From Ministeria vibrans ATCC 50519 (lineage: Eukaryota; Protista; Filasterea): a stretch of DNA of 48,784 nt. The notes beneath the pieces are model-generated. The model was not told the origin of the DNA and did not search any database. It worked only from the letters and a program-made list of their open reading frames with translations. Below are positions 1-7,716 of this stretch, in pieces (position 1 is the first letter of the stretch; every line of letters begins with the position of its first letter). The translations under genes were made by a program, and so were the position numbers. The DNA is taken from positions 1-48,784 of the forward strand of contig CALSCP010001788.1 in the NCBI GenBank assembly GCA_943704425.1. The letters run 5' to 3'.

Positions 1-133
1 TTTTTTTTTTTTTTTCATCTTGCCTTGTTTGTGGACATTGTGGCAATGTTTTTATTTTTTAATGATAATTTTGATGTTGTTAAAATTGTCTTGGACTCAA
101 AGCCTCTTTTCTTCTCTCGCGCCTGTTGAACAG

Positions 134-3100
134 GACCCCTCCGGCACGGTCACTGTCGATGGTGAGGTGAATGCAGGCATCATTCTCTTGAGTGGGGCGA
201 TTTTACTCGACAATATTGACTCGGCGATTCTCTTTGGCGCTGACCCCTGCGATTTTGCCTCGTGCGACTCCTCCCCATGCCTTTCCGGCGGCAGCTGCTC
301 TACAACCGACGCGGGTCCCGTCTGCGCGTGCGTCGCGGGCTACACGGGCGAGTTTTGCGCATCTAATATCAACGAGTGTGTCTCGTCGCCCTGTCTCAAC
401 AACGCCACTTGCGTCGACGCCGGCAATGGCTTCTCGTGCACCTGTGCGCCAGGCTACTTTGGCAACCTGTGCGAAGCCGACACCGACGAGTGCCAGAGTT
501 CTCCGTGTGTCTATGCTTCGACGTGTACCGACGTTGCGAATGGATTTCTGTGCACCTGCCTGGATGGCTACACAGGAGCCGCCTGTGATGCGGATATTGA
601 TGAGTGCGCTTCGAATCCTTGTCAAAATTTCGGCTCCTGTCTTGATTTGGTTAATTCCTTCTCATGCGAGTGTTTTTCTGGCTATGGCGGGCCCTTGTGT
701 GAGACAAACATCGACGAGTGCCTTTCGTTTCCCTGCCAAAACGGCGCGAGTTGCAACGACGCAGCCTACTCTTACACCTGCACCTGCCCGTCGGGTGTTA
801 CCGGCAGTCATTGCGAGTCGGATGTCGACGAGTGTCTAAGCGACCCGTGCGTGAACGGCGCGACGTGTGTCAACGCCGACGACAAATTCTTGTGCACCTG
901 TCCTCTCGGCTACACAGGCCTCTCGTGCGACATCGATATCAACGAGTGTGCTTCGTCGCCCTGCCTGAACCAGGGAACATGCGGCATGTCAGTGGTTGCC
1001 AACGACTACATTTGCGTCTGTCCAGACGGCTTCACCGGTGCCAACTGCGAAACCAACATTGACGAGTGCGCCAGCAACCCGTGCACCAACGGCGGTACCT
1101 GCACCGACGACATCTGGGCGTACGCCTGTACTTGCCCGACCGGTTTTGCCGGCGACGAATGCGAAACCAACGTTGACGAGTGCGCGAGTAGCCCCTGTCT
1201 TGCCAGCGGTACCTGTACGGACAAGGCAAATGGATTTATCTGTCAATGTCCCGAGGGTATCACTGGTGCCATCTGCGAGACCGACACGCGCCCATGTGCT
1301 TCATCACCCTGTCAAAACACGGGCACATGTACGCAGACGGGGACGTCTACATTTGTCTGTACTTGCTCCAGCGCCTACTCAGGTTTCTTTTGCGAGACAC
1401 CACTCAGCGGCTGTCAAATTTACGCATGTCTCAATGGTGGCGTATGCGACTCCACCTACCAGTGTGTGTGTGCCACCGGCTTTGACGGCGACGACTGTTC
1501 CAACAACTGTGGCATCACCCCGTGCGCCACGTCTGCCATCAGAGACATCCCTGTTCCAACATGGTCCCTTCCTGCTACGTGGGACGGCTCCGTGCCTGCC
1601 CTGTGCACAGCCGTCGATCTCGAGAACCTCGTACCAATTCCATTTGTTCTCATACTCTTTTTTTTTTCTCTCACAACCAACGTCCTTTTTTTCATTTTTT
1701 TTTTCAGGATCCCTCAAGCAGCAACTACATTGGCCAAGAGAACATACTTCTCGATGGTGTTGGCGCCGCACACACCATTTTGCTTGGCGGCTCCATTGTA
1801 TTCGACGCCGATGACTCGGTGTTGATCTTTGGTGAGGGGGCATGCTCAGTACCACAGGCACTGTGTGCTTCGTCATCTTGTGCCAACGGTGCCAGCTGCA
1901 CCGACAATCCCATTGAGTACTGGTGTACCTGCGCTGAAGGCTACACTGGCACTCAGTGCGAAATACTTGACGATAGATGTGCCTCTAGCCCATGTCATAA
2001 CAACGCCACTTGCTCGTGGGCGCAAAACAGTTTTAGTTGTGCGTGTGTCGCAGGATTCACCGGTGCCTTCTGCGAGGTTAACATTGACGAGTGTGACTCG
2101 TCACCGTGTCACTCAACGGCCACCTGTAACAATCTCGTGGGCTCTTTCAACTGTTCGTGTGCTCCGGGATACACGGAAGCTCGCTGCGACGCGGACGTGA
2201 ACGAGTGTGACGCGTTCCCCTGTCTTCACGGTGGCTCGTGTTTCAATTCGATAGGCAGCTTTTCGTGTGTGTGTGCCGACGGATTTACCGGCGCCGTGTG
2301 CGAGTCTGACATTGACGAGTGTGCGTCATTTCCATGCGAGAATGACGGCACGTGTGGCCAGGCGGGCGTCGTCGAGATACCGTGGTGCCTCTCCTGCTCG
2401 GGGTTTCCCATCTTAAGCGACGTTCATGTCGGCGACTTGGTGCGCTGGACTGTGAGCGACGGTCCACACACGGTGACGACCGTACCTGGAGCCCCCACAT
2501 CGTTTGACTCGGGCTTTATCACGACCGGAATCTACGAGCAAGTCATGTCTACTGTCGGATCAATCGACTACCAATGCGACGTTCACCCCACAGCCATGAT
2601 TGGAACGCTCAACGTCTTCCCCGCGCCCAGTGGCGGCCAGGGTCGTTTTACCTGCACATGCAACTCTGGCTATACTGGCGTCACGTGCGAGTCTGACGTT
2701 GACGAGTGTGCGTCGAGCCCTTGCCTCAATGGCGCGACGTGCGTGGACAGTGTCGACGGCTTTTCTTGCAGCTGTGTTGTGGGCTACAGTGGCGTCCTAT
2801 GCGAGACTGATGTGGCCGAGTGTGACTCGTCGCCGTGTGTCAATGGCGGCATCTGCGTCGACGAGTTAGATGGATTTGCGTGCAACTGTTCCTCGGGATT
2901 TAGCGGTGATATGTGCGAGGTGAACCTGTCCTATTGCTCCGAGCAGAATGCGTGCAACAGCGTCGGTGCGTGCAACACGACGGCGAACATCAATCCGTGT
3001 ACATGCTTGTCAGGCTACACCGGCATGTTTTGCGAGACTGAAATTGACGAGTGTGCGTCGAGCCCTTGCCTCAATGGCGCGACGTGCGTGGACAGTGTCG

Positions 3101-6100
3101 ACGGCTTTTCTTGCAGTTGTAATGCGGGTTTTACTGGGCGTTGGTGTGCGAGCGACATTGATGAGTGTATGTCGTCGCCATGCGTCAATAGTGGCACTTG
3201 CAGCAACGATGCAGGGTCATTCACGTGTGACTGTGTCGAGGGCTTTCGTGGAAGTCTTTGTGAAAACAATGTCATCTATTGCGATATGGCGGACCCATGT
3301 AACAATGCGGGCGTGTGCAACGACACAATCAAAGTGAATCCTTGCACATGTCACGCCGGCTTCGTCGGTATTTTTTGCGAGACGGATGTGGACGAGTGCG
3401 CTTCGGCGCCCTGTCTCAATGGTGCAAGTTGCCTTGACAGTGTCAACAATTTTACATGTGTATGCGTTGCTGGCTACACCGGCGTCCAATGCGAGACGGA
3501 CATCAACGAGTGCCAGTCTGATCCGTGCAGCAATGGTGGCGTCTGTTCCGACGCTATCAACGGTTTCACGTGTACCTGTGATAGCACAGGCTACACCGGC
3601 AGTCTCTGTGAGTCGTTGTTGACCGACCATTGTTCAAGCTCGCCTTGCGTTGGCACGGCCACGTGTCAATCGCTCGCCGCTCAGTTTGAGTGCACCTGTC
3701 CCACTGGCTACACCGGCCAGAACTGCTCCGCCAAAATTGACGAGTGCGCTTCGGCGCCCTGTCTCAATGGTGGCGTGTGTATGGACAACTTGGACTCCTT
3801 TGTGTGTATGTGCACTTCTGGTTACGCCGGTGACACCTGCGAGCTTGCTGATACGTGCGCCTCGTCGCCGTGTGTCAATAGTGCGGCGTGCACAAACTCG
3901 GTGGACGGACCTGTGTGCGTCTGTGGCACCAAGTTTACGGGTGTATTTTGTGAGCAGCTACTCACCGCGTGCAACAGTGGTACTGCCCCGTGTGCCAACG
4001 GCGGCACATGTTCACCATTTGTGGACACTTTTAATTGTACGTGCGCGCCTGGCTTTACCGGCAGTATGTGCGAGATCAGCGTTGACGAGTGTGTACCGCA
4101 GCCGTGTCTGAATGGCGCCACCTGTGAAGATGGAATTTTGTCATATATCTGTGTATGCACCACCGGCTATGAAGGCTTGCTATGCGATCGTGAAGTGATG
4201 ACGGGCTCTTGCAGCGTCGGCAGTGCACCATGCCAGAACAACGCGACGTGTGTCGACGTCACTACCGGTTATTATTACTGTGTGTGTGCCGCAGGCCACA
4301 CCGGCTCCGCCTGCGAGCACATTGACCAGTGCGCAAGCGACCCGTGCCTGAACGGAGCAAGCTGCGTCTCTGCCTCTGGCTCACATACGTGTGTGTGTGT
4401 TGCGGGCTTTACCGGTGGCGTTTGCGAGACCACCGTCGAGTGTGACTCGTCGCCGTGCAGGAACGGCGGCAGCTGCGTCGACCTGGGTACCGCTTTTTCG
4501 TGTATATGTGCAGCAGGGTTTACGGGTGTTACGTGCCAGGTGGACATTGACGAGTGTGCCAGCAGCCCGTGTCAGAATGGTGCCACCTGTATCGACCTAT
4601 TACATAGATTCAGCTGTAACTGCGTGGCAGGTTTTACTGGCGATCTATGCGCGACCGACATTGACGAGTGTGCGTCGGCCCCGTGTCCCCTGGTCGCCGT
4701 TTGTGTGGACCAAGTCAATGGCTTCAGCTGCGCCAGTGGCTGCCTCTCGATGCCCGTGCCGCCGTTTGCGACAGCTGTCAATGCAACGACCAGCCCGTAC
4801 CTGTTGGGCCAGGTGGTTGCCTCCGAGTGCAACACCGGCTACGAAACATCCTTGGCAGCCGGCTTCACCACCGTCTACACGCGGTGTCTTGGTAACGATC
4901 CGGCGGTCCACTCCGACTCGTGTATACCCGTGGTCTGTGGCGTGCTGCCAGGCGCGACTGGCCCAGGCACGGTGGGCCCCAACACCGGGAGTGCATCCGT
5001 ATCGTTCGCCTCCGACGGCGGTGTGTACTCGTGCAGTCCGGGCTACACAACAACGGGCGTGGTGGACGGCTCTTCATCCTACCGTGTCACTTGCGATGCC
5101 AATGGCACTTTTGTGGGCGACACAACGTCGTCAACGTGCCAACGGATTGTTTGTCCTGCTCTGCCACGACCAACTGACTCTCTCTTCTACATGACCGCGT
5201 CGACAGCGACCAGCGGTGTGACGTACCTCTATGGCGACCGGTTTAGCTACGAGTGTGACGCGGGCTTTACACTGTCCGGACGCGTCGATCAGACCACGAG
5301 GCTCTCGTACGAATGTAGTGCGACGGGCAGATGGACGGTCATCAGTAATGCGGCGACGGACAGCGTAACATGTACATTTGCCTGCAACACGACGCTCCTG
5401 ACGGAGAAACGCATCAATCCCCTCACCGGCGGCCAACTGCTCATTCCTGGCGAAGTCCACATCACCGTACCCGAGTTCTTTGGACCGGTCTCGACGCTTT
5501 TCCAGATCGAATCGTACCCCGTCTCGTGTCGCACCAATGCGCCGTCGGGTGCAGAGGCCAAATCGGAGTGGTATCGATTGCGTCCGTCGCCGCGTCTGTG
5601 GAGCCGTAACATTACTATTATGATGACCATGACAGCCGGCTCCTACTCTGCGCAGGATCATCCCTCAAACTTTTCCGTGATGTACGGCGATGGGGGCTCA
5701 TCGCTGTCGTGGGATCACGCGTTGGACACGACGGTGGATTTCAATACTGGCAAGATACGGGGACTCATGTCGCACTTTAGCGTCGTTGCAGCCTTTGGCA
5801 ATGTGACCAACCCGACAGGCACGACGCCCGTGACGAACGCGTCTGTGCCGACATCGTCGTCGTTCCCCATCATTGCCATTGTCATTGCCATTTTGCTGCT
5901 ACTTATTGTCATCATTGTGGTGCTGGTGTTGCGTCGCCGACGACGCAAACATGGCCACGGACTCAAGCGGCTGCGGGTGCATGGCGACTCGCGCATGAGC
6001 ATGTCCAGCATGACGAGTGTGGTACCGGAGGAGCACGACACATCTCACGTGGGCATTCAGCTCAACGAGTTGCATGTACAACCGGACGTGTCGCCCGTGC

Positions 6101-7716
6101 AGCTCGTTCAGACGAACCAGTACGATCGGCAGTCGTCGTCGGATGCGCCTTTCACTTTCAACGCCAACTCAGCCATGTACGAGCCGACCAACGACGGACT
6201 GCGTACCCACGAGTCCAACCAGTACCAGGGCATGGACAACAGCGATCGAAGCTCAGGTGCGCCCAGCAGTCACTACCAGTACTTTGTGGGTAACCCGAGT
6301 CGTCGCACGTCTGCGGCGGGCGATGTGGGCGGCACCGGTGTGGTGCCGCTGTACGAGCGTGTTGCCGATGGCTACGGCGGCTCCATGTACAGTGCGACGG
6401 CGTCGTCGGCAGGCTATGCGACGCTCGACTCGGAGCCCACCAGTGACGAGGTTGCTGCGTACGGCACGTTTGGGTTGCGCAGTGGCTCCAAGGCAGTGCG
6501 TCGCGGTAATCGCGAGTTTGACGAGTTCAAGCGACACATTAGCGTGCACGCGACGGTGCCTCCTGTCATTGACGAGGACTCCTCCCTGTCCACGCGCCCC
6601 TCCACGGTCGCGGATGGATCCACTGCAGCAGCGATCTCGGGCAGTTCGTTTGGTGGCAACAGCGAGGGCAGCTATGCGTATGCGATGTCGTCGGTGGCGT
6701 CGACGAGCCAGGAGGAGCCCGAGTACCGCTTTGTGGCGCCGGCCATGCGGGAGGAGTATATCTCGTTTATGGCGCCCAACGCAGACATTGTGCCCGACTA
6801 CGCGGGCGAGGTGACGCGCGACCACATCATCTTTGGGGCGCAGTTGGGTGGCGGTAGCTTTGGCGTGGTGCTGCGCGGGCGACTAATGCCGACCCCCAAT
6901 GCGACCGAGGGCGGACGCGATGTTGCGCTCAAGATGCTCACGACGGCCGACAAGGAGTGGGAAGTGTATGCGTTCAAGAAGGAGGTCGGCATGCTGGAGA
7001 AGCTGCGCCACCCACACATTACAACGATGGTTGCTAAGGTGACGGGTGGTGACGACCCGACGCGCTGGATCATTGTAATGGAGTTGGCACGCGGCTCGCT
7101 CCTGTCGCACCTGCAGAACCGCCCGGTGATGCCGGCCGACCAAATGTACATGACGCTTCAGATTGTATCGGGCTGTCGCTACCTCATGTCCATGAACGTT
7201 GTCCACCGTGACCTTGCGGCGCGCAACTGCCTTGTGTTCCGCAGCAACGACGGTCGCCAGCTCGTCGTCAAGATCACCGACTTTGGTCTGACGCGTGATC
7301 TTGCGCCCGTCGACCCCAACGCGGGTCGCTGGAACGCCGCCTACCAGCAGTCTCATGTGAGTTTGCTGCCCCCGGCCGCCCCTCCGGAGATGATGGAGCG
7401 CGGTGAGTCGTCCGAGAAGTCCGACGTGTTCCTCTTTGGCTTCCTCCTGTGGGAGATCTACTCGCTCGGCGACGAAATCCCTTTCGCGACGCCTTACCAC
7501 CTGGCGCTTTTTGGCAACCCACAGCGCCGACTGCCGCGTCTCGCGTGCCACGAGCGCATCATGAATCTCATCGACCGCTGCCTGCAGTACTCGCCTACTC
7601 TGCGTCCGACTTTTGAGGGTGTGGAGCGTGCCATGCACGACTTGTCGCGCAGCATCACCGAGGAGGATCGCACTCTGCGCCTGCGCTACGGCATTGAAGG
7701 CGAAACCATTGCCTAA
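134..7716 (+). CDS. Giant single-pass receptor tyrosine kinase, 5'-partial (about 34 EGF-like repeats, G8-like modules, cupredoxin insert, Sushi-like repeats, ZU5-like domain, TM, Tyr-rich juxtamembrane region, TK domain)
   Basis: Exons 134-1630 and 1708-7716 are joined in frame by a phase-0 GT-AG intron (1631-1707); the upstream acceptor is CAG at 131-133. Repeats have the calcium-binding EGF pattern D/N-I/V-D/N-E-C. TM IIAIVIAILLLLIVIIVVLVL (5869-5931) is followed by RRRRRK. Kinase motifs GGGSFG, VALK, HRDLAARN, DFG lie at about 6820-7640. Confidence 0.93.
2699..3116 (+). repeat. 73-nt exact direct repeat inside the EGF array (2699-2771 and 3044-3116)
   Basis: ttgacgagtgtgcgtcgagcc...cttttcttgcag is identical in both copies, including synonymous positions. 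A second 34-nt identical pair occurs at 3391 and 3739. Confidence 0.9.

Follow-up and report, generated by a model that had tools for sequence, protein, structure and literature searches.

A predicted complete cupredoxin domain nested within an EGF repeat of a receptor tyrosine kinase of Ministeria vibrans

Introduction

Can a receptor tyrosine kinase carry a copper site within its own ectodomain? The question is raised by the first gene of a 48,784-nucleotide stretch of DNA from the filasterean Ministeria vibrans ATCC 50519 (assembly GCA_943704425.1, contig CALSCP010001788.1, positions 1 to 48,784 of the forward strand). This whole stretch is called the window hereafter, and positions refer to it. 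The gene encodes a long array of EGF repeats, a transmembrane helix and a kinase domain, and one of the EGF repeats is interrupted by an insert that an initial annotation, made from the letters alone, described as a complete type-1 blue-copper (cupredoxin) domain which could make the kinase redox- or copper-sensing. Blue-copper domains are familiar as soluble proteins that carry electrons, or as components of copper enzymes, and a His/Cys/His/Met site on the cupredoxin fold is a type-1 copper centre, carrying single electrons. To our knowledge, no receptor tyrosine kinase has been described with a redox metal centre in its ectodomain.

The interrupted EGF repeat and its insert

The interrupted repeat was EGF 16 of about 33, with 99 residues (2356-2652) lying between its third and fourth cysteines (Cys3 and Cys4). 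As the neighbouring EGF repeats have 8 residues in this interval, the net insertion amounted to about 91 amino acids. The host repeat followed the pattern C-x4-C-x5-C ... C-x-C-x8-C (filled by A-S-F-P, E-N-D-G-T, the insert, T and N-S-G-Y-T-G-V-T), with cysteine codons at 2320-2322 (Cys1), 2335-2337 (Cys2), 2353-2355 (Cys3), 2653-2655 (Cys4), 2659-2661 (Cys5) and 2686-2688 (Cys6). Direct reading confirmed, to the base, the interruption after the third cysteine and the resumption described in the initial annotation, and the codons of the four proposed ligands (His 2467, Cys 2575, His 2584 and Met 2596) lay exactly where they had been put. The insert itself, given there as about 90 amino acids at 2365-2622, was rightly placed; its limits were refined to the 99 residues above, with the fold proper at 2368-2619. 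It also held two extra cysteines (W-C-L-S-C) that the initial annotation had not mentioned. The parts of the split repeat were as follows.

2320..2355, plus strand: host EGF, N-terminal half (Cys1-Cys3), with a D-I-D-E calcium-binding-type prefix before it (direct reading; profile positions 1-16 match solved EGF chains; model strand at residues 16-19)
2356..2367, plus strand: linker G-Q-A-G, from EGF Cys3 to the cupredoxin
2368..2619, plus strand: predicted complete cupredoxin of plastocyanin/amicyanin type, 84 amino acids (AlphaFold2, VIA-align, Foldseek, PDB sequence matches)
2383..2397, plus strand: W-C-x2-C motif (W-C-L-S-C) after strand 1 (alignment of 17 copies)
2467..2469, plus strand: predicted copper ligand His (P-H-T-V), invariant in 17 of 17 copies
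2575..2598, plus strand: ligand loop C-D-V-H-P-T-A-M (C-x2-H-x3-M), with Cys 2575-2577, His 2584-2586 and Met 2596-2598
2620..2652, plus strand: return linker F-P-A-P-S-G-G-Q-G-R-F-T to the EGF hairpin (model strand at residues 115-118)
2653..2688, plus strand: host EGF, C-terminal half (Cys4-Cys6) (Pfam EGF partial match, profile columns 17-31; profile positions 108-123 match Notch1 EGF)

The host EGF (2320-2360) kept a D-I-D-E-C prefix but had no Asp/Asn after Cys3, a residue seen in its regular neighbours, and calcium binding at the junction may therefore be lost.

A cupredoxin by sequence and predicted fold

By its sequence matches and its predicted fold, the insert is a complete type-1-copper-type cupredoxin. 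A phmmer search of the insert against all PDB sequences returned 12 matches, all of them cupredoxins. The best (E 3.9e-5, 35% identity) was the C-terminal cupredoxin of Nitrosopumilus maritimus 9cck, followed by plastocyanin, the purple cupredoxin 5fc9 and amicyanins. The Cys and the loop His were aligned in the plastocyanin, 5fc9 and 9cck alignments, and the P-H-T-V strand corresponded to P-H-N-V of plastocyanin, the His being offset by one column. A profile built from the 17 copies of the domain found in the genome (see below) matched 9cck at 1.1e-17, amicyanin at 2.5e-13 and plastocyanin at 2.5e-10, and its two ends separately matched solved EGF modules. Neighbours of the insert in the ESM Atlas were Copper-bind clusters (score 0.93). 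An exhaustive phmmer scan of 1.84 billion representative proteins gave 946 matches (96 at E <= 1e-10), many of them multi-cupredoxin proteins with several matched stretches; all eight of those submitted to Pfam carried Copper-bind, and five of these eight also Cupredoxin_1. Named clusters among the representative matches looked up comprised two plastocyanins and one Flavobacteriaceae protein with a type IX secretion system (T9SS) sorting domain.

A Pfam scan of the window-copy insert alone, with E up to 10, returned zero matches and is a point against the assignment. This miss was attributed to the sensitivity of the Pfam model for that copy and not to absence of the fold. The hidden Markov model search proposed in the initial annotation thus succeeded in part, with cupredoxins matched by phmmer and by the profile at the E-values given above and Pfam silent on the window copy.

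Structure prediction of the EGF with its insert, also suggested there, came out in favor of the domain. The AlphaFold2 model of the composite module (29-sequence alignment) had a mean predicted local distance difference test score (pLDDT) of 89.7, with 94-98 over the insert, and showed a cupredoxin fold in which the EGF hairpin strands were retained (residues 16-19 and 115-118). In a Foldseek search of the PDB, the best 50 matches listed were all cupredoxin-fold copper proteins or domains, with probability 1.00. Superposition on plastocyanin by VIA-align gave a Z score of 12.0 and a root-mean-square deviation of 2.1 Å over 84 residues, and since model residues 22-105 covered plastocyanin residues 1-99, the predicted domain appears whole. 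The claim of a complete cupredoxin was therefore borne out by the PDB sequence matches, the predicted fold and the ligand set taken together.

By fold, ligands and sequence, the guest domain is an ordinary member of the plastocyanin/amicyanin family. Its combination with a six-Cys EGF of a receptor kinase had no counterpart among the outside matches and papers examined (see below). The insert shares with amicyanin, plastocyanin and pseudoazurin (PF00127, Copper-bind) a predicted Greek-key beta-sandwich over the full length (Z 10.8-12.0) and the ligand set His ... Cys-x2-His-x(2-4)-Met. These proteins are free soluble electron carriers of the periplasm or lumen, whereas the insert is nested in an EGF of a eukaryotic surface receptor, and unlike PF00127 members it has an extra invariant W-C..C loop and scores below Pfam level as a single copy. 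The 9cck protein (listed as a copper-containing nitrite reductase and as a multi-copper oxidase) and 5fc9 were among the best matches to the insert (Z 11.2-11.8), and 9cck has the same short type of ligand loop. Their domains feed a catalytic copper enzyme or stand alone, while no enzyme domain is attached to the insert.

The insertion point has a parallel in laminin, whose L4 domain interrupts an LE repeat between its Cys3 and its Cys4 (PMC5338690). The L4 guest differs in being CBM35-like and without a metal site, in its 8-Cys LE host as against the 6-Cys EGF, and in its restriction to animals, and it has no sequence relationship to the cupredoxin module.

The combination of guest and host was sought in sequence collections and in the literature. 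Neither an EGF repeat nor the nested pattern occurred in the best 150 of the 946 representative-protein matches. When a protein collection was searched with the insert region of the exon-2 protein, no entry of 1,100-3,500 amino acids shared the insert. The proteins of the source genome itself are absent from both protein collections searched. A metagenome scan with the EGF-half pattern gave, among the matches listed, no composite module, a weak negative; those listed were L037, a Thr-rich protein whose cupredoxin is free, and L038, a plain array of EGF repeats. Full-text literature searches did not find a ligand-complete cupredoxin inside an EGF of a receptor kinase, and surveys of holozoan tyrosine kinases mentioned neither copper nor cupredoxin. 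The statement in the initial annotation that no characterized receptor tyrosine kinase has such an architecture agrees with these searches, which found none published.

The receptor kinase gene

The receptor gene lay on the plus strand, opening with an in-frame ATG at position 62 and closing with a stop codon at 7716; it had one intron and a product of about 2,525 amino acids. The joined (spliced) protein was used for coordinate bookkeeping only, all searches being made on single-exon sequences. Its main features were as follows.

62..1630, plus strand: exon 1, a hydrophobic signal-peptide-like start followed by about 13 EGF repeats (open reading frame, Pfam EGF; end set by the GT..AG joint in complementary DNA, cDNA)
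1631..1707, plus strand: GT..AG intron of 77 nt with a polypyrimidine tract, in phase (a cDNA contig joins 1630 to 1708; record 16 of DNA run X2 keeps the intron)
1708..7716, plus strand: exon 2, EGF array, Sushi-like and juxtamembrane region, transmembrane helix, kinase and stop
5869..5931, plus strand: single transmembrane helix, then an Arg/Lys stop-transfer run (direct reading and script)
6832..7629, plus strand: cytoplasmic kinase domain, with VALK at 6922, HRDLAARN at 7204-7227 and DFG at 7279 (Pfam and motif reading)

By Pfam, the exon-1 frame contained 11 EGF stretches and the exon-2 frame 18; counting by pattern gave 32 regular EGFs in total, an array of about 33 with the split repeat. 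The insert lay in frame within an open reading frame of 2,064 codons (1522..7716). The kinase scored 172 bits with PK_Tyr_Ser-Thr versus 93 bits with Pkinase in the Pfam scan, and its P+1 segment read P-P-A-A-P-P-E-M-M, which departs from the usual W-M-A-P-E motif. With a signal-peptide-like N-terminus, an ectodomain, one transmembrane helix followed by an Arg/Lys run, and a kinase with VALK, HRDLAARN and DFG motifs, the predicted product is a type-I receptor with a tyrosine-kinase-type catalytic loop.

A Gly/Leu-rich module of about 35 amino acids (G-x-V-x-V-D-G ... I-L-L-x-G ... I-L-F-G) opened each EGF block (134-230 and 1708-1830), its second copy lying immediately 3' of the intron. Further along the array, EGF repeats were near-identical (2699-3073 and about 3040-3420). 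Over 2606-3141 the contig depth was several times higher, and in run X18 a contig went back 345 nucleotides (3043 to 2699). The depth rise and the back-jump over near-identical repeats fit a recent internal duplication, which would also break short-read assemblies there.

Copies of the module, selection and expression

A six-frame search of the 29.7-Mb assembly recovered 17 copies of the domain on 13 contigs, most of them in open frames of 1,000-3,400 codons; identity to the copy of the window was 33-57% in this search and 28-58% when the copies were compared with it further. Thirteen were nested between Cys3 and Cys4 of an EGF. Un-nested copies comprised one between EGFs on contig C1426, two in tandem in a small membrane protein on C1296, and one on C2390, within a protein with SRCR and mucin-like regions. 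Contig C1633 carried two copies. Pfam Copper-bind matched 11 of the 17 copies at E <= 0.01, and the segments from C1633 (33.1 bits) and C1296 (43.5 bits) exceeded the Pfam gathering score of 21.2 bits.

In the alignment of the 17 copies, the upstream His, the Cys, the loop His and the Met were invariant in all complete copies, and remained so after 12 outside prokaryote-type homologues were added. Gly and Trp of the G-D-x-V-x-W strand occurred in every copy, and its Asp and Val, together with the Gly after the Met, in at least 90%. The W-C pair after strand 1 was likewise invariant (17 of 17), with the second Cys spaced by x2, x4 or x6, and the W-C..C motif was absent from the best 150 of the 946 outside matches. 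In view of the variable spacing of its second Cys, W-C..C is probably a lineage-specific disulphide loop and not a second metal site. The ratio of nonsynonymous to synonymous substitution rates (dN/dS) of the insert was 0.19 in the least saturated pair (dS 0.91) and 0.22-0.26 in two other pairs. The insert is under purifying selection.

Public runs from nine studies, with algae, seawater and marine metagenomes among them, contained the window stretch. In run X5, contig record 24 (1,712 nt) covered 1400-1630 and then 1708-2728 with zero differences; the removal of the GT..AG intron indicates that it derived from spliced RNA. This contig passed unbroken through 2356-2652. The initial annotation had named splicing-out of the insert in RNA as an outcome that would speak against the domain, and the cDNA contig, which has lost the 77-nt intron, kept the insert. 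This evidence for expression consists of assembled contigs, and rare insert-skipping isoforms are possible.

These data bear on the possibility that the insert is an artefact, whether an unrecognized intron, a bacterial assembly chimera or a recent neutral insertion in decay. The failure of the window copy in Pfam would fit such an origin, as would the presence of bacterial cupredoxins, one of a Flavobacteriaceae T9SS type, among the closest outside relatives. However, the insert is in frame within a long open reading frame, is kept where the neighboring intron is spliced out, and recurs in DNA sequenced by several independent studies, and the 17 diverged copies on 13 contigs have invariant ligands and a dN/dS of about 0.2. 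Copy number, spliced cDNA and dN/dS refute an artefactual or non-coding insert, which is extremely improbable.

Hosts of the module

Within the DNA examined, a kinase was detected in three host genes only: that of the window, that of C1708 (EGF, Sushi and PK_Tyr) and that of C1426 (EGF, transmembrane helix and PK_Tyr), the latter two also being receptor kinases. The host on C981 carried a Recep_L_domain. On C1809 and C232 the open segment examined ended soon after a transmembrane helix and had only EGF-type Pfam matches. Only giant EGF arrays were detected on C1633, C1139 and C121, where more distant kinase exons are possible. The module is a generic extracellular building block and is not kinase-specific. 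The claim that the kinase carries a cupredoxin grafted into its ectodomain stands, but not as a special feature of that kinase, there being 13 nested copies and a kinase detected in only three of the hosts within the DNA examined. This generic character makes it less likely that the module arose specifically to sense copper or redox state for kinase signaling.

Two of these hosts had further features. The C981 frame (L032, 2022-5111, minus strand) combined the nested EGF-cupredoxin and the Recep_L_domain (the L domain of EGFR and the insulin receptor) with repeats of leucine-rich-repeat type, the contig ending ahead of any transmembrane helix or kinase. The C2390 frame (L035, 1901-7834, plus strand) had 1,978 codons, with SRCR, mucin repeats of T-T-Q-L-P-E type and its one un-nested cupredoxin with all four ligands.

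The range of hosts is relevant to a reading in which the cupredoxin fold would act purely as a protein-binding or adhesion module, similar to ephrins, with copper absent or only structural and no role in redox chemistry or sensing. The receptor-binding domains of ephrins share the cupredoxin fold and have been proposed to descend from monodomain cupredoxins (PMC6485061, PMC6993872). Like the insert, an ephrin is a surface-displayed module of this fold in a receptor tyrosine kinase signaling system. The hosts here are adhesion- or receptor-type proteins with EGF, Sushi, SRCR or Recep_L_domain, and the module, being generic, is tied to no redox enzyme, which would suit an adhesive function. However, ephrins lost the copper ligands (PMC6485061), have cross-sheet disulphides of their own and serve as ligand rather than as part of the kinase, whereas the insert sits in the kinase and all four ligands are invariant in the 17 copies, which disfavors a purely adhesive module. 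Ligands can be lost, as some copies in P0051, a mucin-like outside relative, are without the ligand Cys. Pfam Ephrin gave no match in any scan of the window gene, the insert or the 17 copies, and unlike ephrin the insert grouped with bacterial-type copper proteins in the tree (see below). An adhesion module devoid of a copper function is, on this evidence, unlikely.

The two-cupredoxin paralogue on C1296

The small protein on C1296 (L034, 2896-4011, minus strand) had two tandem un-nested cupredoxins with Thr/Ala-rich linkers, and a C-terminal region with five predicted helices, His being read in four hydrophobic ones. The nearest ESM Atlas clusters to this His-rich multi-transmembrane tail were Cytochrom_B561 (0.88), and Pfam gave DUF2427 at E 0.014. 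For the same tail, the PDB sequence search, the homologue search and Foldseek returned nothing, and the single-sequence AlphaFold2 model had a pLDDT of 57.5. The protein may be a cupredoxin-cytochrome b561 fusion, all tests being below significance. Directly downstream (515-2878, minus strand) lay a gene with a PAS domain (E 9e-16) and a Ferric_reduct transmembrane component (E 4.9e-9), which looks like a NOX or ferric reductase with a PAS sensor and is preceded by a long microsatellite of (CA)n type coding for His/Thr.

This locus enters a further explanation, namely that the cupredoxins are part of a system for extracellular electron transfer or metal handling (such as surface reduction or oxidation of iron or copper), for which the EGF proteins would be scaffolds and the kinase incidental. 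Nearly all type-1 copper proteins are electron carriers, and on C1296 two cupredoxins are joined to the His-rich membrane region with its Cytochrom_B561 and DUF2427 resemblance, next to the PAS and Ferric_reduct gene. However, the cytochrome b561 assignment stayed below every significance threshold, and single domains mid-way in long EGF rods would be an odd geometry for an electron-transfer chain. Such a system is an unlikely explanation.

Origin and outside relatives

A maximum-likelihood tree was built from the 17 copies and the best domain of 60 outside proteins (88 columns, midpoint-rooted). Twelve of the 13 nested copies fell in one clade (support 81/75). All 17 copies lay with six outsiders on one side of a branch with support 96/93, and the other 54 outside rows lay opposite. 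Five of the six outsiders formed one group, in which, among the members checked, one had a Flavobacteriaceae T9SS name and two a Por_Secre_tail domain; the sixth was a eukaryote-looking protein. This topology is consistent with the composite unit having formed by nesting once and then been duplicated, and gives no direction of transfer. For an RPN2 fragment encoded in the window, identity reached at most 63% with proteins named from animals and chytrid fungi and with EukProt entries coded Ihof, CFRG and Nk52, taken to be ichthyosporean.

Eukaryote-looking secreted proteins with tandem cupredoxins and Thr-rich linkers were also encountered in metagenomes and Logan assemblies (P0025, P0051, P0072 and L037 at 1937-2200), P0025 having a tail resembling a glycosylphosphatidylinositol-anchor signal. 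Surface cupredoxins that are free and un-nested may be common among uncultured protists.

Proposed working of the module

The EGF-with-cupredoxin unit would have arisen in the Ministeria lineage and then been copied as a unit into many surface proteins, the receptor kinase included. In each nested copy, the cupredoxin would be held by both termini at the tip of the EGF Cys3-Cys4 hairpin. As the model aligns with plastocyanin residues 1-99, plastocyanin topology would place both chain ends at the pole facing away from the metal site. In that case the copper end, and with it the W-C..C loop next to the exposed His, would be turned from the EGF rod towards the medium. Each domain is expected to bind one copper through its His/Cys/His/Met set, and could serve as a one-electron redox centre at the surface or as a copper-dependent docking surface. 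In the kinase, engagement of a partner or ligand might depend on copper occupancy or oxidation state.

These steps differ in how firmly they can be held. Copper binding alone is likely. That each domain is a copper-loaded, surface-exposed module for redox or copper-dependent docking is held with somewhat less confidence, as the moderately favored reading. It is doubtful that the kinase is metal- or redox-gated, with the state of the type-1 centre altering the conformation of the EGF rod or its partner binding and so controlling kinase output. The same doubt attaches to the broader idea of a bacterial-type electron carrier turned into a standard building block of surface signaling, as a living example of the proposed step from cupredoxin to an ephrin-type module.

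Several points weigh against the favored reading of a copper-loaded redox or docking module, in addition to the Pfam result. The ligand geometry, the W-C..C disulphide and the orientation to the EGF rod are predictions. No redox partner was identified, and the only architectural hint of a redox chain, the C1296 paralogue, stayed weak. The module also occurs in proteins with no detected kinase, and its presence alone implies no signaling role. Support for the clade of nested copies was only moderate, coming from 88 columns.

Significance

If the domain binds copper, the window gene would encode the first receptor kinase to contain a one-electron redox site of its own, and the EGF-rich surface proteins with the module would be the first such family. 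This would provide a means, open to experiment, by which a protist could sense copper or redox state at its surface. For protein engineers, the module would be a natural and repeatedly duplicated example of a whole-domain guest in the Cys3-Cys4 hairpin of a 6-Cys EGF, at the site also used by laminin L4. Copper binding would also bear on the proposal that ephrins arose from cupredoxins, as a ligand-competent cupredoxin would already be present within surface receptors of a probable relative of animals.

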